From Orbicella franksi (lineage: Eukaryota), in NCBI GenBank assembly GCA_964199315.1, contig OZ116701.1:24242001-24306000 (forward strand): a stretch of DNA of 64,000 nucleotides, given 5' to 3'. Shown here in pieces: positions 5,921 through 24,670 of the stretch. Positions within the stretch are counted from its first letter, which is position 1. The number at the start of each line of letters is the position of its first letter. The notes beneath the pieces are model-generated. The model ran no database searches. It was not told where the DNA came from and saw only the letters and a program-made list of their open reading frames with translations. The position numbers and the translations under genes were made by a program.

Positions 5921-6690
5921 ATCAAGCAGCGATGCAATGGCCCCTGTTGCTGTCAATAATGGAGAGATTGTAAGTTGGTTATGAAAATTACACTTTTTTC
6001 TTTTTTTGCTTTGACTTTTTGATGTGGTTTTGTCACAATTTGAACAAACACCTGTCATTCTTACGTAATGTTTTAACAGGAAACCAAACAGCATCATTTT
6101 ATTTCCAAGTAGGTATATATTCAGTTGTTCTTAGCCACCATTTTGCCAGAACAAAGTATATGTATATATAGGTATTTAGTTTGGTACACAAAAAAACAGT
6201 TTACTTGTAAAAACCTTTGTGTTTTTTATATCTTTACATACTTATAAAAAATTGCAGAGGGTAACTGACAAGGAAAAAACTTTCCTTTTAGCCAACAGGG
6301 AGTCGTGCAGAGGCATGGGGTGAAAGCAACCAAAAAATTAGGAGTAGGAGGAGGAGCTTATTCAGCCAGCCTTTTGCATGTATTTGTATATTCAATGTAA
6401 TAAACGCGGTACACCAAAAAATCAGTTTACTTATAAAACTCTTTGTCGTTTCGTATGAAAAAAATGTACAGGAAAATTGCAAATGAAAAGAATAGGGTTT
6501 AGTGATAAAAGGCCAGATCGAATCAAGGAATGAGCCGAAACTATGGAGGGGGAATTGTGACAAAAATGCCATTGAATCACATTTCATGCCATTGGATCAT
6601 CAATGCTATGTCATTGAATCAAACATCGTTCTATCCGACAATATTTTTCATGTCATTGGATCGTATGTCATTCTATCGGACCATATTTTT

Positions 6691-7170
6691 CATGTCACTG
6701 GATCGAACTTCATGCCATTGGATCGGACTTCATGCCATTGGATCGGACTTCATGTCATTGGATCAAACTTCATGTCATTGGATCGAACTTCATGCCATTG
6801 GATCAAACTTCATGTCATTGGATCAAACTTCATGTCATTGGATCAAACTTCATGTCAATGGGTCCAACTTCATGTCATTGGATCAAACTTCATGTCATTG
6901 GATCAAACTTCATGTCATTGGATCAGACTTCATGCCATTGGATCGGACTTCATGTTATTGGATTGAACTTCATGTCATTGGATCCAACTTCATGTCATTG
7001 GATCAAACTTCATGTCATTGGATCAAACTCCATGTCATTGGATCAAACTTCATGTCATTGGATCGGACTTCATGCCATTGGATCGAACTTCATGTCATTG
7101 GATCGAACTTCATGCCATTGGATCGGACTTCATGCCATTGGATCGGACTTTATGTTATTGGATCATGCAT
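6691..7170 (+). repeat. 20-bp tandem array (~24 units) in left TIR of IS3EU
   Basis: Unit CATG(T/C)CATTGGATC(A/G)(A/G)ACTT, head to tail, no spacers. Confidence 0.95.
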
Positions 7171-7445
7171 CATTCTAATGGACACTGTGGGTGCTGTCCT
7201 TTACGTCACTTAATCGGAATTTATGTAATTGGATTGGAATTCGTGTCATTGGATCATACATCATTCTATCAGACCATAATACCTCGTGTGCCACAATATC
7301 TTTGTTTCATTTGATCTTACATTATTTAAGCGCCCAAATCCTCATGTCGGCAAGTGCATTATAATACGGTACATTATAAATATCATACAAGAAGTACCTA
7401 CCTAAAAATTGTCTCCAGGGTGCTTTTCAGGCATAATTTTTAAAA

Positions 7446-10400
7446 ATGGCGGTCACTGAAGAGGGTCAGCATCAAACGGTACAAGAACTGATAGTAAACA
7501 ACGTAAAAACCGTTCTTGTTGATGTTATAAATCGGCTCAATTCGAATACAGGTCTTGATTATAGCTTATATAAGGTTGAATGGCTATGTTCACTGATTTT
7601 GAGACTGGGTGGAATGTTTGAAGAAGAATTGTTCCCAAACTTGCTTCAAGCTCGCCACCTAATATTACAGATGGTGAATGAGGATTCCTTCGACGACTAC
7701 AGTACCATGAGAGCAGTGATAGCAACTGGAAGTAAAGGAAGGCCGAAACTCGACATCAGCTGAAACCAGCTAGAGTATTATCTTGAGAAAGGTTTTAAGG
7801 GCATTGACATAGCCAAGATGCTTAGAGTCAGTGATAAAACAGTGAACAGAAGACTCCATGAATTTGGAATCTCGGTTCGTGCAAGTTATTCAAGTATGAG
7901 TGAAGCAGAATTAGATGCTGTCATCCAGGATATACTTCATAGTTTCCCAAATTGTGGGTACAAGTCCATGCGTGGCCATCTCCTGTCCAAGGGCCACAAA
8001 ATTCAAGAAGAAAGAATCAGAGAAGCAATGAGAAGAGTTGACCCTGAAGGTAATATATCAATGTCAAGACAGTAAGAGAAGACGTGGGAGGTGGGTCATT
8101 AATACAGAAGAACCCCAATTAAGCAGCCACCCTCCAGGAAAGGACAAGTGGCTTTAAAATGTTGCATGTATTTTCAATCAAGTTGTTAACAATTAGAAGG
8201 TTTCACACCTTTTCCTTTGGGTTGCTTGTCATCATGTTGTAGGCACTGCTGTCAGAGGTCTCCAGATTTGTGTGACACAGAAGATCTTACAATGTAAGGG
8301 CCCCTTTAGCCCTTTGGCACATGGATAGTCACCATAAACTGGTGAGGTATGTGTATTTGCCATGAAAACAGCTCATGTTTCTTTCAAGGGTGAATTAATG
8401 AATTAATGAATTCGTTTCCAGAAATTTGACTATATTCATTGCTTTAATATTCCATTCTTGAAGTGAATATTTCAACATTGAATGGCGACTTGATTGTTGA
8501 TTGGATTGTTGTCTGGCTTCACGCAATAAGCATGTAGGAATTTGGCCAAAATTTGCATAATTTTGACTGCAACTGGTAAACTGTCATATGTCACACTGTT
8601 TTCTCATCATTTTGTTTGTCACTTGCTTTTCTTAACCCTCTCATGATAGAAAAAGAGAGAGGTAGAGATTTTAGTGGACTCAAAAGGCTCAAAATGCTGC
8701 TGGCAGAAGAGAAAGTGGGAAAAATGTTGTTACCCAGTTGTTGTTTTTATGGAAATTAGGGATATTTTGTTGCACTAAGTCAGGCATCATGAAATCAACA
8801 TTTTTGTTTTGAATCAAGTTGCCATTTCAACATTGAAATATTCCTTTCAAAAATAGAATATTGAAGCAAAGAATGAAGTCAAATTTCTGTAAATGAATTC
8901 ATTAATTCACCATTGATAGGAACACTTGAGGTGTTTTGTTTATTTGCTATTTTCTCCTTTTGTACATCATGTCCATGTTGCTTTTTAGGTGGAAATTTGT
9001 CATACATGGGCATATTGATGGATTTTCTAGAAAGATCATGTTTCTTCGATGCAATGGAAACAATCAGGCTGACACTGTCCTTGACTTGTTCTTGGAAGCA
9101 GTCAATGTCCATGGTCTGCCATCACGAGTAAGATCAGATCACGGAGTGGAAAATGTGAATGTTGCTTGGTACATGCTTACTCATCCAGCAAGAGGACCAG
9201 GAAGGGGCAGTATAATCGCTGGGCCAAGTGTACACAATCAACGGATAGAACGATTGTGGAGAGACTTGTTTGCAAGCTGTATCTACATTTATTATTCAGT
9301 ATTCTAGTTTCTTGAGGAATCCGGGCATTTAGAGTTGTCCAACAACATCCACATGTTCTGTTTGCATTACACATTTCTACCAAGAATAAAGCAGCACCTC
9401 CATGATTTTGCGAGTTCCTGGAATGATCACCCAATCAGAACTGCAAGAAACAAAACACCAAACCAGCTTTGGATAATTGGTTTAATTGACAATGCAAGAA
9501 TCATGGAAGTTTCTATGGAGCAACAGGTGGGAGAGCTTTCTTATCTTATTTCCCTCAACATTTGTAGGCCAATGACAATCTCTTTGAAATGGCTTAAGGA
9601 TGTTCAGCGTTAAAATATTATATACCTCCCCGTCTTCGGAATTCTATACAGGAATTCTAGTACACAGCTTCGTTGATGAATAACTTTTGTAGGTATAAAT
9701 TTACTAGCATTCTTCGTGAATGCTGTTCACTGATTGGCTTTGCTACTATCTATTGTTCTTGATTGTAAGTAGCAGTTATTGAGAAAATGGCACCTGCTTC
9801 TTCCCGTTTGCAAAATGTTTTTAGTGACTGTAAAGATTTGGATAGTCTTGTTGTTAGTTTTGAGCATCTAGTTGCTTTATACCAAAACAATAAGATTATT
9901 CACTTGATTATTAGATCCTTTTATAGTTGACTTGGGCTTTGCCCTCATCAGCTATCACACAATAGAAATCTCATGCTCATAATCTAATTGTTAAGTAGAA
10001 TTTATAAAGATTATCAAAGAAAACAAATTGAGATTGCTTTACAAGTCTCTTAAAAATTCAGTGCCATCAAAGTGAAAGCTACCCAATTTCTAATCCATTG
10101 TGGCCAACAATAATTACTTTAATATTATTTAGTGGAAGATTTTCTCTTTGGGATGTTTTTGTGTATCTAGACAACAGACAGGTTTATTATAATAATTTCA
10201 TCGGTTATTGTGGCATATTTTTGTGCTAATGGAGAATTCAGCAGGCTAAAATATATTTTATCTCACTGCCGTGGACCAATCAGAAACAAGAAAGTAACAA
10301 GCTAGCCAATCAGAGCTGCAAATGAGGGCAATCTATGAAGACTGTCACCCATCTGTAATTTCCTGTTCTTTTCATTCATTTTGTATAAATCTTGCCTTAG

Positions 10401-10623
10401 CAGAATTGGGATGACTATGGCATAGACTGTGATGGGCCCCTCCCAGAGAGTTGTCAAGATGAGGAGGCTGTGATCATCCCGAATATTCCGAACCCACTAA
10501 CAGACAGTGATTATCATGACCTAATCCATGCCATAAATCCAATAACAGCATGACAATAGTTATGGGATTGATGTGTACTTGAGTGCTTGCAACTTTGTTG
10601 CGGAGAGACTCTCATTGCAGTGA
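7446..10623 (+). pseudogene. IS3EU transposase (integrase-like DDE core), 4 exons
   Basis: Exons 7446-8049, 8243-8346, 8989-9526, 10401-10623 with GT-AG introns. GRPK + [38 protein letters not shown]. Stops at 7761 and 9305; frameshifts in exons 2 and 4. Confidence 0.88.
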
Positions 10624-12089
10624 ACAGTCAATCTCTGGCGATGACTGGCAGGAGGTGTTAGGAGTCTAAATTTGTGATTCAGAAGTTTAGTCAGAGAACA
10701 AATTCGAGAGAAAATAACCCTCTAAAACCAAATCCTGGGAATATTGTGTTCTGGCATGCTAGTTCCAGCACTAAATCAGAGCAATGATAACTGTGTTTAC
10801 TGTTATCTCAGAGCTAATCAAGATACAGTTTAGCAAATACTTGTTTCTCTTTTATTGATGACAAATCAACTCATTATCAACTCATTGCACTAGGCACCTA
10901 CTGGTATCTGTGTGTTTCTAACAAAGAAGTAATGTTGTGTTAATCCTATGTTATCTGGTATAAATGACCTACTGGGTACTTCCCACTAATGTAACTACAT
11001 GTATGTATCCCATGTCATTTTAATCACATGATTCATATTTGAATGCCAATGTGGCTTTTTACATAAAAAAAGCTCTAATAAAACTGGAACCTAAAAATTT
11101 ATAACTTGAAAATCTCTGAACAACAAGAAAACAACTAAAATTTACCATTTCAACTGAAATGCAATAACACAGGCCTTTTACATGCAATTAAAATCATCAT
11201 ATGATATTCTTATATTTCTGAATTTCAACATTGCAAAAACAAACACAACAGTGAAAATTGTACACCTGTATGATAAAGACACGTTCATGCAAATGAAAAT
11301 CCTTTTGACCCATATCGGATTGCAGTGTCCATGCAGTTCATGAACTCCTGATATGTATTATGGCCAATGGGAAGCAATAAAGACATGAAACAACACTCTG
11401 ATGTTGGTAACTTGCTGCTCTCATTTGTATTAAACTTAACCACCAAGATCTCTTTTCGTGGAGGTAGGAAATCCCATCCAGTCCAGAAGCAGCACAAGTC
11501 ATTCAGCCGCGTCTCACCTGCAAGTTTAAGGGAAACATTCATGACCAAATTATTTTTTAGTGTAATGATTATTGTTAGTGGGCACTGGTTGTGTTCTATT
11601 GCAGTTTTATGAATGTGTTTGGTTCCCTCATAATTGACATTGAAGTCTATTATTGTTAAATTTTACAGTTATGTTGCAGACCATTAATGGACACAGACCT
11701 TGATGAACAACACTTCCCTTAACCCTGCACCAGAATGTCTAAGACCAACATGTTATTGCCGTCATCACTTTAACACCTATTATCTTTTTTGAAGAAGGTG
11801 AAACCAAATGAAAAAAAAAAACTTCCAATGTGAAGTTATTTTTTTAATGTACTCACTTTGATATCAGATAAATACCTTCCTTTCTTTGGGCAATTTCCTG
11901 CACATATTGCTCAAACATAATTCTTGCCTGGACTTCTTTCTCTCCACTTTCATTGTCATAGGTAACTTTAGCCAGGAATTCTGTAGCACAGATGTGCTTT
12001 GCAGCATGAGGCAGAAAAACAATCTCTACCAGTGATGGCTGCTGGGTTAGGAAGCTTTGCAATGTCACCTCATTCATTCCTGTTACAAT

Positions 12090-12180
12090 TTGAATAATAA
12101 TAATAATGATAATAATGATGATAATAATAATAATTAATAATATTACTAAATAATAATAATTTTAATTTTAATAATAATAA
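12090..12180. repeat. (AAT)n microsatellite in HECT gene intron
   Basis: Imperfect AAT run. Confidence 0.85.
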
Positions 12181-15100
12181 AAGAGTTAAATGTAGGAATC
12201 ATTACATTTAAACACATGCAGACTGCTACTACTGGTATTCCACTTTCCAGGATTGAAAAACCTTCAAAAACCAGCACATCAAAGGTGTACTATACATGTA
12301 ATCTTTCAACAAATTTTAGCCCTGTTTCTTGGCATCTTCAGGACAATGTTCATTCAATCACAAGCTACAAAAGCATGACAACTCAGTGTCTTATCTGGGC
12401 CACATTCTGAAAGTACATGTGTAAAACATTCAATATGCTAATAAATACACCGCAGATAAAATAATCTTGTCATTACCGGTATTACCTTTAGACATGTCAT
12501 CCAACTCACGTTTTCTCTTATCAATTACAAAGTACCAAAGCAGTCCTTGAATTAGGACATCTCTACCACTGCAGAGAAGTTCAGGTTCCAAACCAGCCTC
12601 CATCATGTAGGTAGCTAGGTTTGCTCTTAGTTCATCTGAAATCTTTTCATCAGCATTCCACTGTTGTAACTGTTGTATCCAAACAAAGATCTGTTACATC
12701 CAAGCTTTAATTTAAAGTCAAAATATGTGTTTAAAATAAATTTGTCTTTTTGCATGCACTTAAAAAACTTGACCATCCCAACTGTGCTTTGAAGTGTAAA
12801 ATCTGTCATTACTTAATTCCTCATTGACATAATCCTCTAGCAATGTGTTAAAAAAATAAAGGGAACAAAACCTCAATATTATTTCTCAGTCCTTATACAT
12901 GTACTCTGATATGGTGGCATGTCATATCATCCTCTTGGATACCCCAGATTATGGTCCCAAAGACTTGGGTTCTTGTATGCTGTCTTCAGCAAGATGTCCA
13001 TGATCATATTCAGAGCAAGAAAACATGGAAATTGAGGTGTTATCCATTGATGAATAGGGAAGAAAACTATATGGGTAGCTTAAAAGATAGATGACTTTAG
13101 TGTACACGTAACCTGCACTAGCTTTCACTGTATTAAGCTTTAGAAAAAATAATTAGCAACTATTCCATGAGTACAAATGCTTGTTTTATTAAAAACACCC
13201 AAGGAATTGCGATATTTGAGCTCCCTGCCTGTTCTTCGCTGACACTTATACCTAAGGTACCATATTTGTGTTTCATGGTATATTAGCCCATTTCTCACAA
13301 TGGCTAAGCCAATTAAAACTCTGGAATTGCATTAACCAATAATCCAGTTTTAAATATAATTATTATAAAAGAAAATTATTTCAAACCCTAACAAACCTCT
13401 TGTATGGTCTCCCGCAGGATAAGATCAGGAAGATCCTCCAGTACTATTGGGGGAGGATTCTTTGCTAGGTCATCATGAGACCAGTAGTGCTTTGCCACGG
13501 GAGAGAGTCCATAAACACCAGGCCCTCCATGTAATATGGAGTGACCAATCATCTTGCCAATGGCGGTATATGCTCCCATCTGCTGCCCAATCTGGTTGTG
13601 TATGGAAAGTAAATGGTCAAGCTCTCCTTCAAAGAACAAAATGGGTCTCCCTTCACCATGAATTCCTTCTTGTAGAATCTTCATGGCACAGACAAAAAAC
13701 TCCCTAACTGGCCCCGCACGAACTCCTTCTTCACCTTCAAACCGCACCCTGGGTGGTACTCTCAAGTTCTTTCGGGGGTCTTTATACAAACCCAAAATAT
13801 CGTTTTTGAGCTCTTCATGTCCTTCCATTCTGCTGACAAAGAAACGCTCTCTTGGTTTATCCCTTTGCTTGTTGCTTCTCTGAAAATCTTCTAAGGCATC
13901 CATGGGACTTAAAGTCTGGGTATAAGTTCTCATCTTTTCTGGTGTTGTTTTTGACGTGAATGCTGGAGTCAAAAGATCAACGTCGCTGTCGTGGTCCTCA
14001 TAACCTAAAAAATTGTAATACAGCAAGAGAGGTAAAAATTACTATAATGAAAACAGTCATCACAACAATGAGTAATCATGTCTAAGCTGGCTGCCTACTG
14101 TAAATTTTGACTTCAAAAAATTAGGTATTTTGGTCCAAATGGCCCTTTATAGAAGGGGTTGCTAACCAAATTTGCTTGCTCAGGTGGGTTCAGCCGTATG
14201 TAAATAAGTTTTCCTGTAGCTGGATAAATCTCAATACTCACTATTAGGGATTATTTTTTGTTCCTTTTTTCTTAATTTTCTTAAAGAAATTTTGTAAAGA
14301 CCGAGCCGGAAGTTATGTTACACATAAGAGTGAACCGGAAGTTATGTTACACGTGTGGGGCGATTGACAGTTCAAAAATAAAAGTCCCTGGATTTTGGGG
14401 AGAAGCGCTTATGCCATCAGAAAAAAAAATTGTGTGGATGTTTTGCACTTTTACGGGAATTTCAATGGGAAATCTTGACTTTGTTGGAATTAATTTGGAG
14501 TGGAAAATTTATGAACCTAAGGAGAAACACTCACCATTTACCATGTCTGGTATTTCAAGAAATAATCCTAACAACTCCTGTGCAGCAAGGTTGACATCTC
14601 CATTGTTATTGAACAATGATTGAGAGATCTGCTGCAAAGCTGCATCTGGACATAACTCCCTACATCGCCAGTTGATAATGCAGAAATGGTGGATGGACAC
14701 TGAGTCAGACCATATTTACAATCTCTTGTCATTCTAATGATTGGCACAGGAAGAAATTAAGTCAACATTAATAAATATTGTCTATAATAGCTGCAAGATA
14801 CTTTCCCATCATTTTCCAGCCCTTTATACCTAGATGGGTCAGTACTACCACTCTTTATTGGTTGCTGATACAATAATAGTATGAAACAAATACCCAATCA
14901 AGGATAACCAACTTGTGATCATTTTCAGATAAGAGGTCACCACAACAACAGCTGAGTTATGATAGGTTATTGAGTTATTATCAGCATGCCATGTTACAAC
15001 TTTTTAGCAAGGTATCAAAAATTCTTTCAGATTGAGGACATTCCCAGAGCTTTCAATAATTTCATTTACTTTTCAGCCACAGACCTTTTTACCTTTTTTT

Positions 15101-17332
15101 ACATAATAAAAATTATATGGCAGCTTTTGATAAATGGTTCATGAGCCCATGTTAACTGTAATAATAATTTCTTTCAATCACACCTTTCCTCCTCAGATTG
15201 TTCTCTGCATCTATCTACTGCTGGACCTTCAGATACTACTGGTGCCTAATAAAATAATGCAAATAATAACAATGACAAAAACCATAACAATTATGACAAT
15301 AAGTAAACTGATTTAAACAGTTGATTAATAACTATAGTATCAGTACTGAAACAAATACACCAACCAAAATAAATAAAAAAAATAACAATTTTTTTATACA
15401 CTGAAACCTGTGATCAGTGATTGAGTCATTGCTTAAGTAAATCCCTGAGTGTATTTAGAATCACCTTTCTCAAAACAGGGAGTGCTGATGTTCCATCTCT
15501 GGAAGAAAAGTATATGTCATGAATGTTACACTTTGAAATCTAGCATACACTGCAGGTGCTATGTAACTATGCTGTAAGACGCAAGTACAGCTGGCTACTT
15601 TTTGACTATTTGAGGATAATCACTTAAGCTGGAATAATTAACTTTCTGCATCAGAGCATCAACATAGTTTGGAGAATTCAGTTCTCAAATAATGAATTAA
15701 TTATCAACTAATGCTCCAGTTAAGTTAATGTTTTGTGCCAAATTCAGTTTACCAAATCAGCCATAAAAAAAAAAGTACTGAAATAATATATGTTGCAAAA
15801 ATAAAGAAGTATATTAAATATTGTTCTAATATTGGGATTGAAGCTGAAGATTAATACATAATTTATATCAAGTCAAAAGGATGCACATTGACTTTTTCTC
15901 TGTACTTTACCTTGATAAAGCCAGTGGGGTCATTTTGGATTCACATACATCAACCTAAAATGTACAAGTGAAGTCATTAAAAAGTACCTCATTTAGCACA
16001 CAAACTCTGATGTGTGATCAAGTTCCATTGTCAATGGCACTTACTACAGTATTCACATTGTAATACTCAAAATCAACACTAACATTTAGTTCATCAACAA
16101 TCTATGTAAGGTGTACATGACTAATTCGACTGTTTTTAATTGTCATTGATACAATGGGATCATACCTTTTCATCAATCACATCTCTGAAAAACAAAACAG
16201 AACAAAAAATACTGAGAACCCAGTCCCATGTTTGTTTTTTAAGTTAATGTATTTTACATAGGTGTCCCCCTTTACAGACATTCTGATCACTGAAGCTGAA
16301 AAAATGTCACATTTTTTGAATACTGAATGATTAATATCATCAGGCAACCTTTTGGCTTCACATAATTTATTGTGTGATCCAAAAGTTTCTTTATACTCTT
16401 TAACCACCAAATGACTTCCATTCTAACCCCTATGGATAGATTCATTTACCTTGAGGATCTGCCTCCTCAGACCTGTTGGTGTTCTCTCACCTGGGCCATA
16501 GCAATCATCAAAGTACAGTTCAAACACTTAACCTTTGGAGAAAGCGCAGCCTAAAAAAAGATATATACTACTGATAATTTAACACCACGTAACACTTAAA
16601 ATATTTTCCCCATCATTCATAAATGTTACCTCAGGCACATCTGGCTCCTCATCTAGGTCAGCTTGGAGAGGACGAATGTAGGCAACAGCCTGCCCTAACC
16701 TGTCCTTAAGATGTGGGGCTGTGTAGCCAAAGGCCCCTGGATATACCAAACGTAGCTGCCTCTGACCACCACCTCCTCCTTCTGCACGGAGGACTTCAAA
16801 CCCACCTCCACTTTTCAGTTTTGGAAAGCGTTCCTCTAATGCCCAGGCCAACTCCTCATGACTTGCATTTTTCTTAATCGACAAGTGGGCTTTGCCCAAA
16901 CCCACATCTAACAGCTTACTTAGCCTCTCCCTTGATAGAGTGATATTTTCTTCTTGCAGGCCAAGCAAACAGAAATCATGTGTCCAAGTCTCCTTGGACA
17001 CAAACATTTTCTTGGCTGGGATATACCCAGCCATCTTTTGTTTTTTAGGGAGTGGCTGACCTCTGCTTGTACGGGATGAACACAATCCTGGAAATCTTCT
17101 CCTGAAAATCAATAAAACTTTTGGTTTCCAAAGCAGAGTATGATGCTTGTTAGTATGTACCACACAAGTGAATAGTGCTTTCCGCACAGGCTGATTGGTT
17201 AACTCGGAGTGATTAGCAAAGCACTATCTGAGCAGCCCAAGAGAAACAAAATGGCTTTGCCCGTCACTTTGTGTACCGAAAGTAATGTTTTGGTTCACTA
17301 GTTATTCAACTTGTGTGGTATATACTAAAACA

Positions 17333-17435
17333 ATTAGTCACCTCAGTGTCAGTGAAAGTGGTGAATATTTACCGAGCCGCAAAGTGGAGAGGTAAATATC
17401 CACCACTATTCACCTCCACTTCGGTGAATACTTGT
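17333..17435. repeat. Short palindromic interspersed element (MITE-like) in intron 1 of the HECT gene
   Basis: Arms GTGGTGAATATTTACC (17358-17373) and GGTAAATATCCACCAC (17391-17406). Confidence 0.55.
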
Positions 17436-18370
17436 TTATTATAATACAATAAACAGGATATTTCTTTCAACCATGCTGAAGAAAATAACAGATAATGCAA
17501 ATTTAAAAATTGCTCCTTCTTATTGGCACCCCTCGAGAATTTCAATGCTAGAAAGGACTGGGTTAGGATATAAATATAAGGGGTATAGAAACAAATATAA
17601 GCTTGTGGTACAAAAAGTGTAAATTCCAAAAGTACTTTTTACACCAGTTAATTTTGAGCTTTTGATCACTTAAAACTGCTTAAAATACTGATGCTCAAAA
17701 CGTCGCTAGCGTACAACGCTTGTATCGCTATAATCTGACAACGATAAGGGAAACAGCTGCATACAGACGCTCAGTGATACTTGGGCATTTTTATAAGCTT
17801 AACTGTTTCTATCAAAAATACAAACAGGAGAAAAATTATGTTCCATACATGACCGAACTTGAAGCTAGCACCTCTAGCTCAGATTTAGAAATTATCTGCA
17901 ATAAAAACACAGCGCCAAAAGCAGCAACTCTTTACTCGGGTAGTTTCTAGGGGCGCTTTACGATTACCTGAATTCCATAGGGGCTGACATCTTTGGAGCT
18001 TCCACATGCGATGGCGGCAGCTGTCGGTCTAGCGCGTCGCTTTCGCAAGGCTCCGTGCCTTGGGGACTGCTTTCCGTTTTCTCCAGGTGACTTACAACTT
18101 CTCTCAGGAGGGACTGTGTCTTGAACATCAAGTTTTCTTCTTCTGCCATGTTTTTTTTGCTTCTGCTATAAATTATATGTAAATATATGCCAGCACTACC
18201 CAACTTTCCGGCTCTTGTGTGAATCATGGAATGAGTTGAAACCACTTCAAACCGGTTGCACCCTGGGAACTTTGTGCCTGAATGCATTCTGGGAAATATT
18301 ATTTTTTATGATGAACCGCTGACCCGATAAAAGTGCTCCAATGAAATGAAATCAATCCAAAAGAATGATA

Positions 18371-18450
18371 GGATCCAATAACGTAAAGTCCGATCCAATA
18401 ACATGAAGTCCGATCCAATGGCATGAAGTCCGATCCAATGACATGGAAAA
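18371..18450 (-). repeat. 20-bp tandem array (4 units) in right TIR of IS3EU
   Basis: Reverse complement of the left-TIR unit. Confidence 0.9.
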
Positions 18451-21400
18451 TATGGTCCAATAGAATGACATACGATCCAATGACATAAAAAATATTGTCG
18501 GATAGAACAATGTTTGATCCAATGACATAGCATCGATGATCCAATGGCATGAAGTGTGATTCAATGGCATTTTTGTCCCAATTCCCCCTCCATACGAAAC
18601 TAACATAGTTTACTTGACAATTGTATGTCGGGCTTATAAGTGGAAAACGCTAAAAATTGTACACTATACGTAAATGACACTGGTTACTGTTATGGAAAAT
18701 CATATTTTAGAGTCAGCTTTGTATAAAGCAATGATTTTGCCTGATACCCTCTTGGGAACAGCAAAAAATTATTTAGAACAAACATGCTAAGTATAGTCTT
18801 CATTCCGTGCAATGGGGCATAGATAGAAGGTTCTGGAAGGAAAGACACCTTATTTTATACCACTGATGACAAGCAAAAAAGTCATGGATGCCCCGGTTAA
18901 AAATATTTAAATAACTCTATTAATTAATACCAGTTCTAATTTAAAGGAAAACGTTATGAGAATAAAATAAAAGTTGTCTGTACGACGAAGCATGCCTTCA
19001 CTGTCTAGACTGAGTCCTAAAGCTTTTTTAGCATGTATTCGAATATCTTATGACGATAAGCCTGCCAGCCACCCCACCCTGCGCCGTACTGTTTCCACTC
19101 AGCGGCTGGTCAGCGGTCACGTTTATGAGGTAAACATGGAGATCACTTCCTGATTACCGTCCTTGTCAATCAGAAAATCAAAATACCAGCATCATATTGC
19201 CTCAAAGATGAAGCAGTTATGTTGTTCGTACTTCTCATTCGAGTCGAAGCTTGGGTGGCACAGGTTATTTCTCATGGTGCAATCGACGAGGGGAATTCGA
19301 ACACCAGTTGTAGTGTTTGAATTGTTGCCGGAAGAAATGGTCGTATGGGGATGTAGGAATAGTAAGTTTAAAGAACAATTTCAAATTTTGCCGCTTGAAT
19401 TGAAAGTAAAGTGCATTTGAATTGCTTTCATATGTATTTCTCACGGTTTTAGATCTACCTGCTCGATTTATATCAAAATCGGCCAGACCGCTCTTACAGA
19501 GACACTCTCTTAAATGCTGCTGAGGATTCAATACTGAGCTGGTCATTGGCAGAGTTTAATGACTGGCCAGTGCCAGGGGTTGACTGAAATGGTTACGACT
19601 TGACAAAGGTTGTACTTCAGTGTGGGTTCCAGCTGCTGTTTCATACATATGATGTGAAGATACAATGATTGGAAATACAGCAGATAAATGTACTGGCATG
19701 GTCTGAATAGAATTCACGCATGTGTTTAAGGGCTGCTCTGGTAGGGCAGTTGACCACCTATTGTGGTCATTTGAGATACTGAGGCCTGAGGAACAATTGG
19801 AGTTGAAGAATATAGAATTCCACTCGATGGAGAAAGTGAAGCTGCCACGCTGTTAACAGGAGGCGTTAACCTGGATAAATCCGTGGATAAAGTACAGGGG
19901 TCATTTGTGGCTACTTTTACTGTGGTCATCTGAACCCTTGGAATATTTTGATCCGTTAATGGTTGCTTTGGAACTGTCATATCTTCAACTTTCTCTCTTT
20001 GTTTCAACAGCTCTCTCACTTGCTCATAGGGCCTGTCCACAACAACTTTCTTACCTCCTAGGTCTTGTTCCTTGGCTAGTTGACTTTTTGAGTCTCTCCA
20101 CCTTTTTGTGACACTCTTTGTACATTTTCTCCAGGATATCTACAACTTGCTTCAGTTCCTGTTCTCGCCTACTGATTTTCTCCTTGAGTTGTTCTGACTG
20201 ATCCTCAATCACAGATTCTCCAGGTGTTGTTCTGGAACCATTTAAGCTACTGTTGTGACTTGGACTGCCATTTAGGTATCCCCTGACCACTCTTCTGATG
20301 TCACTGAAGTCCTCTTCCAAACCTTCTAACTCACTCACTGCGGCGCTAAGTTTTGCTGAGTCGCCACCATCCTTGTAATACGCTTCTAAATTTTTGACTG
20401 CATGAACTACATCCTCAAAGACAGCAGAGAGAAGATTCAAACTTTCCATCACCTGCATTTTCAAAGCCATTCCTCCCTCCAAGGTCATCAACAATTTCGT
20501 GTTTGTTCTTGTATAAGCACATTTGAAGAAGCTAGTCATAAAAGGGGATAAGTGACGATTTTTGGTTGCTTTTCTTTTTTTGCTCCAAATTAGCTGAATT
20601 TTTGCATGTGGTCTTCAATGTAATAGAAAAACGTGGTTCTGTATTTTTGTCGCTGGTTTTTGCTTTGTTCTCAAGTTAAAACATATGCAAAAAACTTGGC
20701 TTTTCCTGGCCATGTCTTTAGGAGTCTATTTGTTGAACAGCAAACAGGCAGACTGTTTATAGTGTATGAAGTCAAAATCAAATCCCACAGCATATAGAGT
20801 GGAAATCTGGGAACAGATTGTTTACAGCGGTTGTGACGTGAAGACAACACATGAATTGATCGAGCGTCAAACAAAATACCATCAAACAAAAAAGAGATGT
20901 GCCGCATTAGAGCTCTGTCAACTAATATCTTAAGCATTGTTTTAAAGTACCTTGTATGCCTGCCTGGTGGTTGAGAGGCATCATAAAGCCTCAATAAACC
21001 TGTAAGTCATCAGCACGTTTTAAAGAATCAAAATGTGTTCTGAAACTTCGAAGGCAGCTGATATACTGTAATCGTGTTATTGGCATTCAAAGTCAGATCG
21101 AGCCAGGTAGCAAAGTCCAAGAGCAGTTCTTGCCCAAGAAAAATACCCTCTGGTGAGTTGTGGCCCATTTGCCAAGCGTTGCCAGTGTCAAAGTTTGGAA
21201 AGCGAGAACTGGTTTTAGACTTATAAAATTTGTCTTGTATTGACCGCCATGTTTTCCCACGCAACAGGTGTAAAGACCCTTCCCGGCATGCATTTCAATT
21301 ACGTTCTGCGGACGTTTCTCAAACTGGTAACTAGATTTAAACATAATAATGGCCATCAAGTAACGATTGAGTGTAACAGATCTGTGATCCAGTTTGTGTT

Positions 21401-21790
21401 GATTTTAGTTCAAATCGGCATGATTTGTAGTGTTTTGAGCTTCTGGGATCAGTGGACATGCAGATGTATGGAGACCCGTATGTTGCGCAGAAGGGTTAAT
21501 CTGTTAATCTGTCAGCCCTATTTATAGAGCGTTTTCACGTGGAGTCATCAAATTCGTAAATCCAAAACTAAACAGCCACCAAAGTTGTTATCCTCACCAG
21601 GCATAAGAAGTACCAGCGCATTTTGAACTTCAAAGTTATGGCGGTGTGTGACATAAAGCTACGATCGTGTTTGTCAAAAACTATGTATTTATCTCATGAT
21701 TTTTAGCCATTTGAGACGTTGCCCTATTTGGAAAAGTGCTTATTGAAATGTTTTTATTTGTTTTATTTTATCTTTATTTACACCTTTTTG

Positions 21791-22020
21791 GACCTAAAAT
21801 CAACATCATTGAGCTTATGCACTGCTTGAAATTGACATTTTGCTGGTTTCTAAGTGAAATCAATATCCTTGCCGTCATGCATTAACGTCAAATCAACATT
21901 TTAACCTATTTAGACCTGAAATCAACATCATTGAGCTTATGCACTGCGTGAAATTGACATTTTGCTGGCTTCTAAGTGAAATCAACATCCTTGCCGTCAC
22001 GCGTTAAAGTCAAATCAACC
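21791..22020. repeat. 122-bp tandem duplication
   Basis: GACCT(A/G)AAATCAACATCATTGAGCTTATGC... starts at 21791 and 21913. Confidence 0.9.
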
Positions 22021-22624
22021 TTTTTATTTTTTTTGAGCTGAAATTAATATTTTTTTAAGGTAACTATGGGCGCCAGAATTTGTGACATTTGTTCGTGCTT
22101 CTTGCTTCGCGTTTGGTGTTAAGTTTTGCGTAGTTTCTTTTGTTTTGTGCGCTTTTGTATATGTTATGTTCATTTGCATACTCTATAAGTTCAGTTCACG
22201 TGTAATTTATTTCAGTTAGTAGCGTCATTGGGTTCTGTGAGCGTCTCTGGTTTTCAGTTTGTCTTTGGTTCATCACATTCGTCTTGTAGGTTTCTTCGTT
22301 TATTTCGCTTTGCTGCTTTTCTGCATTCTTCATGTTCGGTCGTTGTTAGTTATTTTATGTTCATTCCCGTGTTTGTAATTTTGTTATTTTCAGTTACCGT
22401 GTTTCGATCATTGGGTGGAATAAATTTCTATGTTAACGGAAGATCCGAAACCAGTTAAAAGCGTGGGCGACTTTAGTAACACATTACGAGAAAAATCAAC
22501 ATTTTGCTGTATTTTTAGTGAAATGAACATCTTTGCGGTCGCACACTGACGTGACAACAAATATAAGTTTTTTGTATACATAATGTCTCAGAAACAATGC
22601 AAACCTCAGCAAAAACACATACAA

Positions 22625-23011
22625 AACATTGTTTAACACACCTAAAAAATAACGCATGCGAAATTTGATGCTTTTTTGACAAAGTTCACTTTTGAGCAAA
22701 CTACCTAATGCCCATTTCCACTGAGCCCTTCCCATAAATGAGACTGGGCTTTGTTATAATAAACCAAGCTGATCCTTTGTTATGAATCCTTTGTTATAAT
22801 AAACTGAGGTGAGACTTTGACTAATAACAAAGGCTCGCTTTGGTTTAATATAACAAAGGATTGGCTAGGTTTATCATAACAAAGGCCTTGGCTTCGTTTA
22901 TCTGAAGGGCTCAGCTGAAAAAGGGCGTTAGGTATTTTTCTCAAAAGTGAACTTTGTCAAAAACGCTCAAAATTTCGCATACAGTTTTGTTTAGGTATGT
23001 TTAGCAATGTC
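22625..23011. repeat. ~390-bp foldback palindrome
   Basis: GACAAAGTTCACTTTTGAG...GAGCCCTTC versus GAAGGGCTC...CTCAAAAGTGAACTTTGTC, with inward TTTGTTAT/ATAACAAAG repeats. Confidence 0.75.
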
Positions 23012-23417
23012 CCATAGTTTTTCCGCTAAACTTTGCTTCGTTTTTGGGATATTGCGTATGCATAAAACCACTCGGTTTTCCTAGCAGCGTCTTTATAAAG
23101 CGAAGCAAAAACCAGCTGCAAAACTACAGGAACATGTTTTTCTATTACATTGAAGACCACATGCAAAAATTCAGCTAATTTGGAGCAAAAAAAAGAAAAA
23201 CAACCAAAATCGTCACTCACCCCCTTTTACGACTAACTTCTTCATTTGTACTTTCCCTTGTCTCTCTTTAGTCGTTCGGCCATTTCAGTTTTCATTCCAA
23301 AATTCGTAGCAAAATCCAGGTAAAACAGGTCAACTCTTCTTGAAAGAACCTTGCTCTGCTACCAGATGTTCACCTGGATTGCTACTCGAAGCATTTGGTC
23401 CTTTAATTCAAAACAGT

Positions 23418-23681
23418 TGTTCAAGCCATGGCAAAAGGTCTAAACAAACACGGCAGATCAAGACAAGAAAAACCTTGTGATCACTACAATGAACTGCGCA
23501 TGTGCACACTGCAATTACATCATAATACTTCAGAAAAGCAATTACATAATAAAATCTCCGGAACATGTACACTGGATTTGTACCATCATACCTATTACCA
23601 GATTCTTGACCTGTTAGCCTGGATTCTTTTCTTGAGCCACTTGTAAGAGACTTTGAAGATGGATTCATTGAAGGTTCTACA
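23418..23681 (-). repeat. Possible 5' LTR of the BEL element
   Basis: TGTAGAAC...TTGAACA on -, just upstream of the gag ATG. No clear PBS and no second LTR in the window. Confidence 0.3.
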
Positions 23682-24399
23682 TATTTATATTTACCATTGT
23701 TTTAGTAGGATGATAAGTAGCAGGATTTGGCTCTGTACAGTTTGTACATTTTTATTAATAAAAATTGGGGTTTGTGGCTAGGTCAAGATAAGTTACATCA
23801 TTGATCTGAAAGATCTTCAGTGAAATTTACCGATAGTCAATGTTGTTCTTTAGTCAATATTATTCTCAATTAAATTGATATGATAACTTGTGTCAATTTG
23901 ACTTCTTATTTTATTATGCTTAGAGGATATTAAAATGTTAACTTTTCAAACTAGATGCCTTGCTGCAGTCGTTTATATACTGGGAAGTACTAGCTATATT
24001 GTAACTCAGCTAAATGTTCTGCATTTGAAGTCGGACAAAATTCAATCGAATTGATGTGCTCGAGCTATTCTGCCTTTGATTGCATTTCTTGGAATCGATT
24101 CAGTCAATTAATAGCTTATTACTTGTTTGCAGGCCTTCAGGACGTGAAATGAGTCAAGGTCTTTATATCAGCCTATAAACGTTTCAGTCTATTTTCCTTT
24201 GCCTTTGTCATTGTTGTTTTTTTGCATTTCTCAAGCAAGCAAGACATATTGTGTTTCAGAGTTATGGCAGTACGTGACATAGAGCTATGAATGCGTTTTT
24301 CAAAAAACATATACTTATCTCGTGATTTTTAGCCCATTCAGGAGTTCAAGCATTAGGGAAAGCACTTATGTAAATGTTTGTTTCTTCACTACAGATAAT

Positions 24400-24670
24400 C
24401 AATCGCCTTAAGTTCAGCGAGTACCTCAGCATAGATATGTCCATTTTCTGAGTTTTAACATTAGTGAATATGTTTTTTCTTGTAATAACCACTGCTTATT
24501 ATGATATCTATAGTATCATCTAACAGGGACTGAGACCATTTCGCTTTTCTTCCAGCTTTCTTTGCCTTTTTGTCAGCTTTCTCAGAAACAGAGTCCTCCC
24601 CATCTCAATCCTCATCCCCATTTTCATCTTCACCATCACTCTCATAGGACATCTCTTCTGGCTCCTGATG
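24400..24670 (-). pseudogene. Myb/SANT-like (trihelix) DNA-binding domain fragment
   Basis: Manual translation: acidic stretch, then KKAGRKAKWSQSLLDDTIDIIISSGYYKK...KNGHIYAEVLAELK, with stop and frameshift. Confidence 0.5.

Follow-up and report, generated by a model that had tools for sequence, protein, structure and literature searches.

An IS3EU/GingerRoot-kind transposon with a HECT-type ubiquitin ligase gene in the coral Orbicella franksi and its relatives in corals and fish

The window analysed here comprises 64,000 nt of Orbicella franksi (GCA_964199315.1, contig OZ116701.1, positions 24,242,001 to 24,306,000 of the forward strand), and its segment 6542–18594, 12,053 bp in length, is very probably an old copy, now inactivated, of an autonomous IS3EU/GingerRoot-kind transposon with two genes, in which the transposase gene is accompanied by a selected gene for a HECT-type ubiquitin ligase. 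The same inverted ends enclose the ligase gene in corals, another NCBI assembly and a clingfish, an rva_4 (integrase core) gene adjoins it in a pipefish, and by these comparisons the ligase gene appears to be a constituent of the transposon lineage that has been conserved under selection, and not a one-off capture. The structural and evolutionary parts of this reading, namely the anatomy of the element, its HECT cargo, the recurrence of the gene pair, selection on the ligase and the death of the present copy, are held with high confidence; any specific mechanism by which the ligase would act in transposition is doubtful.

Anatomy of the element and its HECT gene

An initial annotation, made from the letters of the window alone, had described terminal inverted repeats (TIRs) and a perfect 6-bp target-site duplication (TSD) around two convergent, intron-containing genes, and this description was confirmed. 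The TIR arms are 223 nt long and the duplicated target reads CGAAAC; the transposase gene lies on the + strand and the ligase gene on the − strand, and all ten of their modelled introns (three and seven, respectively) are of the GT..AG type and keep the reading frame. The sequence at 6542 is TATGGAGGGGGAATTG..., and its reverse complement closes the element at 18594. The terminal 40 nt occur at two sites in the window, both of them element ends, as against none expected from shuffled sequences. Between the arms there are 15 differences, 14 of which are transitions (Kimura two-parameter distance 0.072). The array of 20-nt units that follows the left end (Table 1) has a right-end counterpart of 3.7 copies in inverted matches at 18372–18445, and these subterminal units may be candidate transposase-binding sites.

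IS3EU elements are characterized by an rve-type transposase without the HHCC finger, TA..TA ends and 6-bp duplications (PMC10045372, PMC12730594), with termini reading TAYGG..CCRTA in fungi (PMC12730594), and GingerRoot, known from coral, sea anemone and fish, belongs to the same lineage (PMC10045372, PMC6839031). The window element starts with TATGG at 6542 and runs to 18594 with CCATA, is flanked on both sides by the 6-bp duplication and encodes an rve-type DDE core (Pfam rva_4) in which D, D and E are present; its first transposase exon gave helix-turn-helix (HTH) matches, and inspection of the translation of that exon revealed no HHCC pattern. By these hallmarks the element appears to be of the IS3EU/GingerRoot kind, in agreement with its initial assignment. 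The likeness extends to the long TIRs and to the hosts, which include corals, sea anemones and fish, whereas the published descriptions consulted make no mention of a ubiquitin ligase and here a multi-exon HECT gene is the constant second gene.

The ligase gene was modelled as eight exons (E1–E8) from splice sites and homology, and its product amounts to 741 aa when 22 nt lost in the window copy are included. The peptide at the E1/E2 junction, PMEF/RRRFPGL, corresponds to EMQRSFPAIF in full-length fish proteins, and this agreement supports the model across a junction. The proposed HECT identity, with a catalytic Cys and a Phe at position −4, was upheld by profile search and alignment. The C-lobe piece scored 33.7 bits with Pfam HECT, the curated cut-off being 23.9. 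Its motif LPTSECCF aligns with LPTSHTCF of E6AP and LPTAHTCF of AREL1, by which alignment the second Cys of the motif is the catalytic one; it occupies position 35 counted from the C-terminus. The window protein ends in ...KGFSFA and the fish relatives in ...GFGLV or GFGLI, and none of the full C-termini compared lacks the catalytic Cys or the −4 Phe.

The N-lobe exon alone gave no Pfam match and no sequence match in the PDB, and likewise nothing was found when a fish ligase protein was searched by sequence against PDB chains. This exon has 428 relatives, 141 of them at E ≤ 1e-10, and an AlphaFold model of it built with 48 relatives reached a pLDDT of 88.9. All of the 50 best PDB matches of this model are HECT domains (TMq 0.42–0.55), among them those of NEDD4, WWP1/2, Smurf, ITCH, HUWE1, E6AP and HACE1. 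Based on the C-lobe alignment and the modelled N-lobe, the cargo gene is predicted to encode a complete HECT domain with catalytic Cys and −4 Phe.

Recurrence of the gene pair and constraint on the ligase

Contigs encoding relatives of the N-lobe exon (the L loci) were collected, both genes were mapped on them and their ends were searched. The co-occurrence of the HECT gene with an integrase-core transposase within TIRs, which the initial annotation had anticipated, was found repeatedly. The HECT gene is convergent with an rva_4 gene at eight other places (L002, L003, L005, L006, L007, L009/L010, L012 and L014), and three of these pairs lie in elements bounded by TAYG..CRTA ends and 6-bp duplications: L005 with TIRs of 435 nt (99.3% alike, TATGG..CCATA, TSD TAAAAT), L007 with TIRs of 473 nt (98.9% alike, beginning TATGACG, TSD CAAATG) and L012 with TIRs of 705 nt (99.86% alike, TATGG..CCATA, TSD AATAAC). 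The last is a 20.5-kb element on chromosome LR131986.1 of the clingfish Gouania willdenowi and encloses a 724-aa HECT gene together with a 469-aa gene with HTH and rva_4 domains. Its ligase is annotated as ‘uncharacterized protein LOC114478851’, an identical protein is encoded at a second locus (LOC114476475), and a third close paralogue (LOC114464317) is present in the same species, a multiplicity that fits recent transposition. The same convergent pair was detected in the pipefish Corythoichthys intestinalis (L014).

The siblings L002, L009 and L010 share 94–97% nucleotide identity with the window element, and L009 represents a separate insertion since its flanking DNA differs. At L004:5601–13240, a 7.6-kb segment with TATGACG.. 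ends that are 75% alike and a TSD of GTTTTT carries the ligase gene and no transposase, and is a non-autonomous derivative which has retained the cargo. The transposase of L005 has an in-frame stop at L005:13672–13676, within the NQRIERLW motif (NQRIE*LW), despite ends that are 99.3% alike.

Comparison of the ligase between the window and L009 over 704 codons gave a dN/dS of 0.24, with 29 nonsynonymous and 32 synonymous differences (29/61) where 78.5% would be expected to be nonsynonymous (binomial p = 1e-7). The gene thus appears to have been under purifying selection between the siblings, and the true constraint would be stronger than 0.24 because both of the compared copies have since decayed. 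Between families, the exons of both genes show 40–69% amino-acid identity, and nucleotide similarity is limited to the exon stretches, as judged from L001, the one locus compared in this respect.

Synonymous divergence between the window and L009/L010 is about four times lower in the transposase (0.018) than in the ligase (0.073), and the two halves of the element may therefore differ in history; this suggests that copies have exchanged sequence by recombination or gene conversion, leaving a mosaic element. Nucleotide identity to L002 declines along the element, from 97% through 95.5% to 93.6%.

Table 1. Features of the window element, in order of position.
Feature	Position	Strand	Evidence
Left target-site duplication, CGAAAC	6536–6541	.	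Read directly; identical to 18595–18600
Left terminal inverted repeat, begins TATGG	6542–6764	+	223-nt arm
Subterminal array, 23.8 copies of a 20-nt unit (TTCATGTCATTGGATCGAAC)	6689–7164	+	Tandem Repeats Finder
T1, N-terminal region with helix-turn-helix	7446–8049	+	Pfam HTH matches
T2, first catalytic Asp (ALWHMD)	8243–8346	+	L010 reading fits RRxYxVxxPLALWHIDGNHKLIR of L005 and L007
Inverted-repeat block, 84-nt arms, 86% complementary, within transposase intron 2	8399–8909	.	Repeat finder
T3, rva_4 integrase core, second Asp (RSDHG) and Glu (NQRIE)	8989–9526	+	Pfam rva_4
T4, C-terminal DYGIDxDGP...NSYGIDVY region	10401–10623	+	Conserved in L005 (E 6.6e-6) and sibling copies
E8, HECT C-lobe, catalytic Cys (LPTSECCF), Phe −4, stop TGA 11285–11287	11285–11517	−	Pfam HECT; E6AP/AREL1 alignment
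E7, HECT region between the lobes	11876–12079	−	Splice sites; conserved in L001, L002, L003, L004 and L006
E6, HECT N-lobe continued	12486–12690	−	Splice sites; conserved in L001–L007
E5, HECT N-lobe, open reading frame	13397–14004	−	Relatives; AlphaFold; PDB fold matches
E4, CUE-like module	14535–14733	−	Weak Pfam CUE match on L009 exon
E3, UBZ-like C2HC zinc finger	16450–16550	−	C-x2-C-x11-H-x3-C in siblings
E2, conserved N-terminal domain, predicted ubiquitin-like (beta-grasp) fold	16630–17101	−	Coral-to-fish alignment; AlphaFold; Foldseek
E1, ATG at 18149, predicted disordered N-terminus	17968–18149	−	GT donor; junction peptide
Right terminal inverted repeat, ends CCATA	18372–18594	−	223-nt arm, 93% complementary to left (repeat finder)
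Right target-site duplication, CGAAAC	18595–18600	.	Perfect 6-bp match to left

The transposase was modelled as four exons (T1–T4) from splice sites and homologues. For pieces of its open reading frame (ORF), Pfam rva_4 gave E values of 1.2e-43 and 4.3e-17, and weak matches to HTH profiles lie upstream; the best rva_4 match covers window 8936–9307, and the sibling L010 scores E 1.2e-72. Read in the frame of the siblings, the transposase comprises about 489 aa, comparable to the 469-aa gene adjoining the fish homologue. The inverted-repeat block in its second intron was considered as a nested miniature inverted-repeat transposable element damaging the gene, and was ruled out as such since it is common to L010; the window/L010 alignment is unbroken across the block, which is hence a feature of the family.

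Of the modules preceding the HECT domain in the ligase, the one in E2 is conserved from coral to fish. Pfam gave no match for this N-terminal domain. Its AlphaFold core has a pLDDT >90, Foldseek matched the model to SAP18, the ubiquitin-like (UBL) domains of USP7, the RAWUL domain of RING1B and UBX domains, and a protein-language-model search pointed to the same UBL lead; a ubiquitin-like beta-grasp fold is thus predicted. The ligand pattern C-x2-C-x11-H-x3-C of E3 is present in L002, L003, L004, L005 and L009. In an intact sibling E4 reads ...LRELCPDATLQQISQSLLNNNGDVNLAAQELL..., and the L009 exon has LCP in the position of MFP and contains ELL. The fish relatives possess two UBZ-like fingers and no CUE-like stretch.

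Elsewhere in the window, an ORF at 29450–29875 (−) matched Pfam DDE_Tnp_1_7 (piggyBac-type, E 3.9e-12) and another at 31777–32436 (+) matched DDE_Tnp_4 (Harbinger/PIF-type, E 5.8e-20), and a 381-aa ORF at 221–1366 had no Pfam match.

Decay of the window copy and evidence against the reading

Neither gene is intact in the window copy, which the initial annotation had not recognized. Nucleotide comparison with the siblings L002, L009 and L010 identified six lesions specific to the window element, of which the transposase gene has four and the ligase gene two. In the transposase, T1 carries TGA at 7761–7763 where L010 has CGA (Arg) and homologues read ISREQL or ISEEQL; T2 has lost 2 nt (AC) at ~8275 and T4 has gained 1 nt at ~10543, both being frameshifts relative to L010; and T3 contains TAG at 9305–9307 where L002, L009 and L010 have TAC (Tyr). 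In the ligase, the codon of the fourth zinc ligand in E3 is TGA at 16467–16469 as compared with TGC in L009 and TGT in L002, and 22 nt are lost behind 14658 in E4, between AGGGAG direct repeats, shifting the frame. L009 and a contig of sequencing run X2 both contain these 22 nt. The window element is thus an old inactivated copy in which both genes are pseudogenes, and it would consequently be mobile at most in trans. One of the three nonsense lesions is a CGA to TGA change, which together with the 14 transitions among the 15 TIR differences fits decay by deamination of methylated CpG.

The siblings are in varied condition: in L009, E1 is interrupted by a stop and the beginning of E2 is missing, L002 shows truncation and frameshifting, and L010 is open in all four transposase exons and in E5–E8 of the ligase, its contig stopping before the earlier exons. 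L009 is without the equivalent of window 17039–17637, which includes the first 63 nt of E2. Within that interval, 17150–17549 in ligase intron 1 is a short repeat of very high copy number, with a word depth in X2 of 15,000–26,000 as opposed to ~130 elsewhere in the element, and loose read ends cluster at 17150, 17181, 17391 and 17441. The ligase-intron stretches 13150–13349 and 14350–14549, with X2 depths of 2,371 and 535 against the same ~130, are probably nested repeats as well.

Several results weigh against the reading of the element as a functional two-gene lineage with a spliced HECT gene. With respect to the HECT domain, the full-length fish protein scored 18 bits, which is below the Pfam cut-off. 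The ligase of L001 (L001:2109–11888), the closest cross-family homologue with 69% identity in the N-lobe and with long introns, had no transposase or TIR within 10 kb, and some copies such as this one may be host-kept or decayed. The transposase showed a dN/dS of ~1 between close siblings, with 20 nonsynonymous versus 5 synonymous differences. The HECT and transposase trees of six taxa have the L006+L007 clade alone in common, the remaining branches being weakly supported. Regarding the accessory modules, Pfam zf_UBZ reached E 0.04–0.07 (13–14 bits, cut-off 25.6) even on intact sibling exons, and Pfam CUE reached E 0.025 (14.7 bits, cut-off 21.1) on the intact L009 exon. Of the UBZ and CUE modules proposed initially, the first shows its zinc-ligand pattern in the five copies named above, and the profile scores of both are below threshold; the labels ‘UBZ’ and ‘CUE-like’ seem reasonable, not established, and ubiquitin binding is putative.

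Transcript data did not bear out the proposed splicing. In three poly-A RNA-seq runs labelled with the species (X22–X24), almost no reads fell on the exons and none were spliced across the modelled joints, so that the gene models rest on splice sites and homology; the few poly-A reads on the element fall in the nested repeats at 13150–13349 and 17150–17549. In the ‘metatranscriptomic’ run X2, depth is equal over introns and exons, and this evenness indicates that it holds DNA. The runs X1–X14, all labelled metatranscriptomic RNA-Seq, held 57–69% of the words sampled from a stretch that is about half intron; such ‘metatranscriptomic’ RNA runs carry much host DNA.

Possible roles of the ligase

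Eukaryotic DNA transposons are usually regarded as one-gene elements, and it is rare that accessory transposon genes are retained for hundreds of millions of years. Other selfish elements and pathogens supply their own enzymes of the ubiquitin or SUMO system, as in the case of the ULP1/OTU-type proteases of some DNA transposons, the RING-type E3 ligases of herpes- and poxviruses and the HECT-like effectors of bacteria. The present gene resembles these in principle and differs in kind, as the transposon ULP1/OTU proteases are erasers and the viral E3s are of the RING type, whereas here a eukaryotic-type HECT writer is encoded.

The nearest precedent is found in fungi, where IS3EU elements carry genes for TET/JBP dioxygenases and alpha-kinases for which an anti-silencing role of the cargo has been proposed (PMC12730594). 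As with the HECT gene, these are extra genes, and the alpha-kinase gene is placed opposite to the transposase; they differ in enzyme class and in occurring in fungi and not animals (PMC12730594). Furthermore, the fungal TET/JBP genes move from one transposon superfamily to another, whereas IS3EU-type transposases were the only ones in whose company the HECT gene was seen. Our literature search found no description of an IS3EU and HECT pairing; Repbase was outside this search, and an unpublished or database-only note may exist. Literature on G2E3 and transposons, HECT and transposase, GingerRoot, IS481EU and Hydractinia yielded nothing relevant either. IS3EU elements with accessory genes are thus known, and what appears to be new is a HECT accessory gene in IS3EU, a class of cargo for which no earlier report was found.

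Among named proteins, G2E3 and ‘G2E3-like’ proteins are closest to the HECT domain by Atlas clusters, a hemichordate G2E3-like protein sharing 36% identity with the N-lobe. The window ligase differs from G2E3 in lacking PHD/RING-type fingers, in having UBL-fold, UBZ-like and CUE-like modules instead and in its location inside a transposon; the PHD/RING fingers of true G2E3 were found by Pfam in none of the exons and in none of the full-length fish relatives. The initial annotation had suggested that many ‘G2E3-like’ genes of aquatic animals could be transposon cargo. This holds for fish genes annotated by NCBI as ‘uncharacterized protein LOC...’ which lie inside or beside elements, and not for the sole ‘G2E3-like’ homologue (L013), a hemichordate fn3-HECT tandem pair with no transposase or element ends within 10 kb.

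As to what the ligase does, the transposase would, like other enzymes of its class, excise the element at the TATGG..CCATA termini and reinsert it with a 6-bp duplication, and the ligase would be produced together with it. Its putative ubiquitin-binding modules might bring it to ubiquitin-marked chromatin or to sites of DNA breaks, where it might ubiquitinate a host factor of repair or silencing, or the transposase, and thereby raise transmission of the element. That an ancient IS3EU lineage common to cnidarians and teleosts encodes a HECT ligase with ubiquitin-like and putative ubiquitin-binding modules in order to rewrite host ubiquitin signalling at excision or insertion sites, or on silencing factors, is a tentative proposal in which we place somewhat more doubt than trust.

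Alternatively, the ligase could be a self-limiting regulator that ubiquitinates its own transposase or marks it for degradation, an autoregulation that would hold transposition at a level the host can bear instead of attacking host factors. This would be in keeping with the constant linkage and convergent orientation of the two genes, with the retention of the ligase alone inside the TIRs of L004 and with the inclusion of the transposase among the targets proposed initially. A brake that acts in trans, however, is hard to select for at the level of the single copy, and the UBZ-like and CUE-like modules suggest partners that are already ubiquitinated and not a naked transposase; we regard this explanation as unlikely.

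It is improbable that the protein is a pseudo-enzyme, that is, a ubiquitin-binding scaffold whose HECT domain does not transfer ubiquitin. The domain is divergent, as seen from the N-lobe exon without a Pfam match, the fish protein below the cut-off and the weak sequence matches to solved HECT structures, but the spacing between the catalytic Cys and the C-terminus is canonical, coral and fish proteins alike retain the −4 Phe, and the predicted fold of the N-lobe is fully HECT-like.

A third possibility is that a host G2E3-like HECT gene was captured and is carried along as a neutral passenger which contributes nothing to the IS3EU element. DNA transposons do capture host genes, and the TET/JBP and alpha-kinase genes of fungal IS3EU move between transposon families (PMC12730594); moreover, some HECT relatives (L001, L013) have no transposase nearby. 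Decay would nevertheless be expected of a passenger over the span from coral to teleost, and what is observed instead is an architecture and orientation unchanged over that span, a low ligase dN/dS and the retention of the catalytic Cys and −4 Phe in all full C-termini compared, so that this explanation is very improbable.

Finally, an ordinary coral HECT gene flanked by chance by inverted repeats from unrelated insertions, which the transposon-rich surroundings with their piggyBac-like and Harbinger-like ORFs might bring to mind, is scarcely credible in view of arms that are 93% alike over 223 nt with a perfect 6-bp duplication exactly outside them, of L009 with the same end and genes in other flanking DNA, and of four further elements (L004, L005, L007 and L012) with TIR and TSD around the ligase gene.

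The reading of 6542–18594 as an inactivated IS3EU/GingerRoot-kind element with a selected HECT gene has consequences beyond this copy. Long-kept accessory genes point to host pathways which an element must handle, and a transposon HECT ligase offers a handle on how cut-and-paste elements meet host repair or silencing. The window copy is a relic, and the young fish element is the better experimental material; as young copies exist in the clingfish, the two proteins form an experimentally tractable pair. For genome annotation, the finding is a warning that some of the ‘uncharacterized’ HECT genes which occur in multiple copies in fish and corals belong to transposons. If the proposed role is true, the ligase would be the transposon counterpart of viral E3 ligases, and a considerable number of the HECT genes annotated as ‘uncharacterized’ in fish and invertebrates would be genes of transposons.

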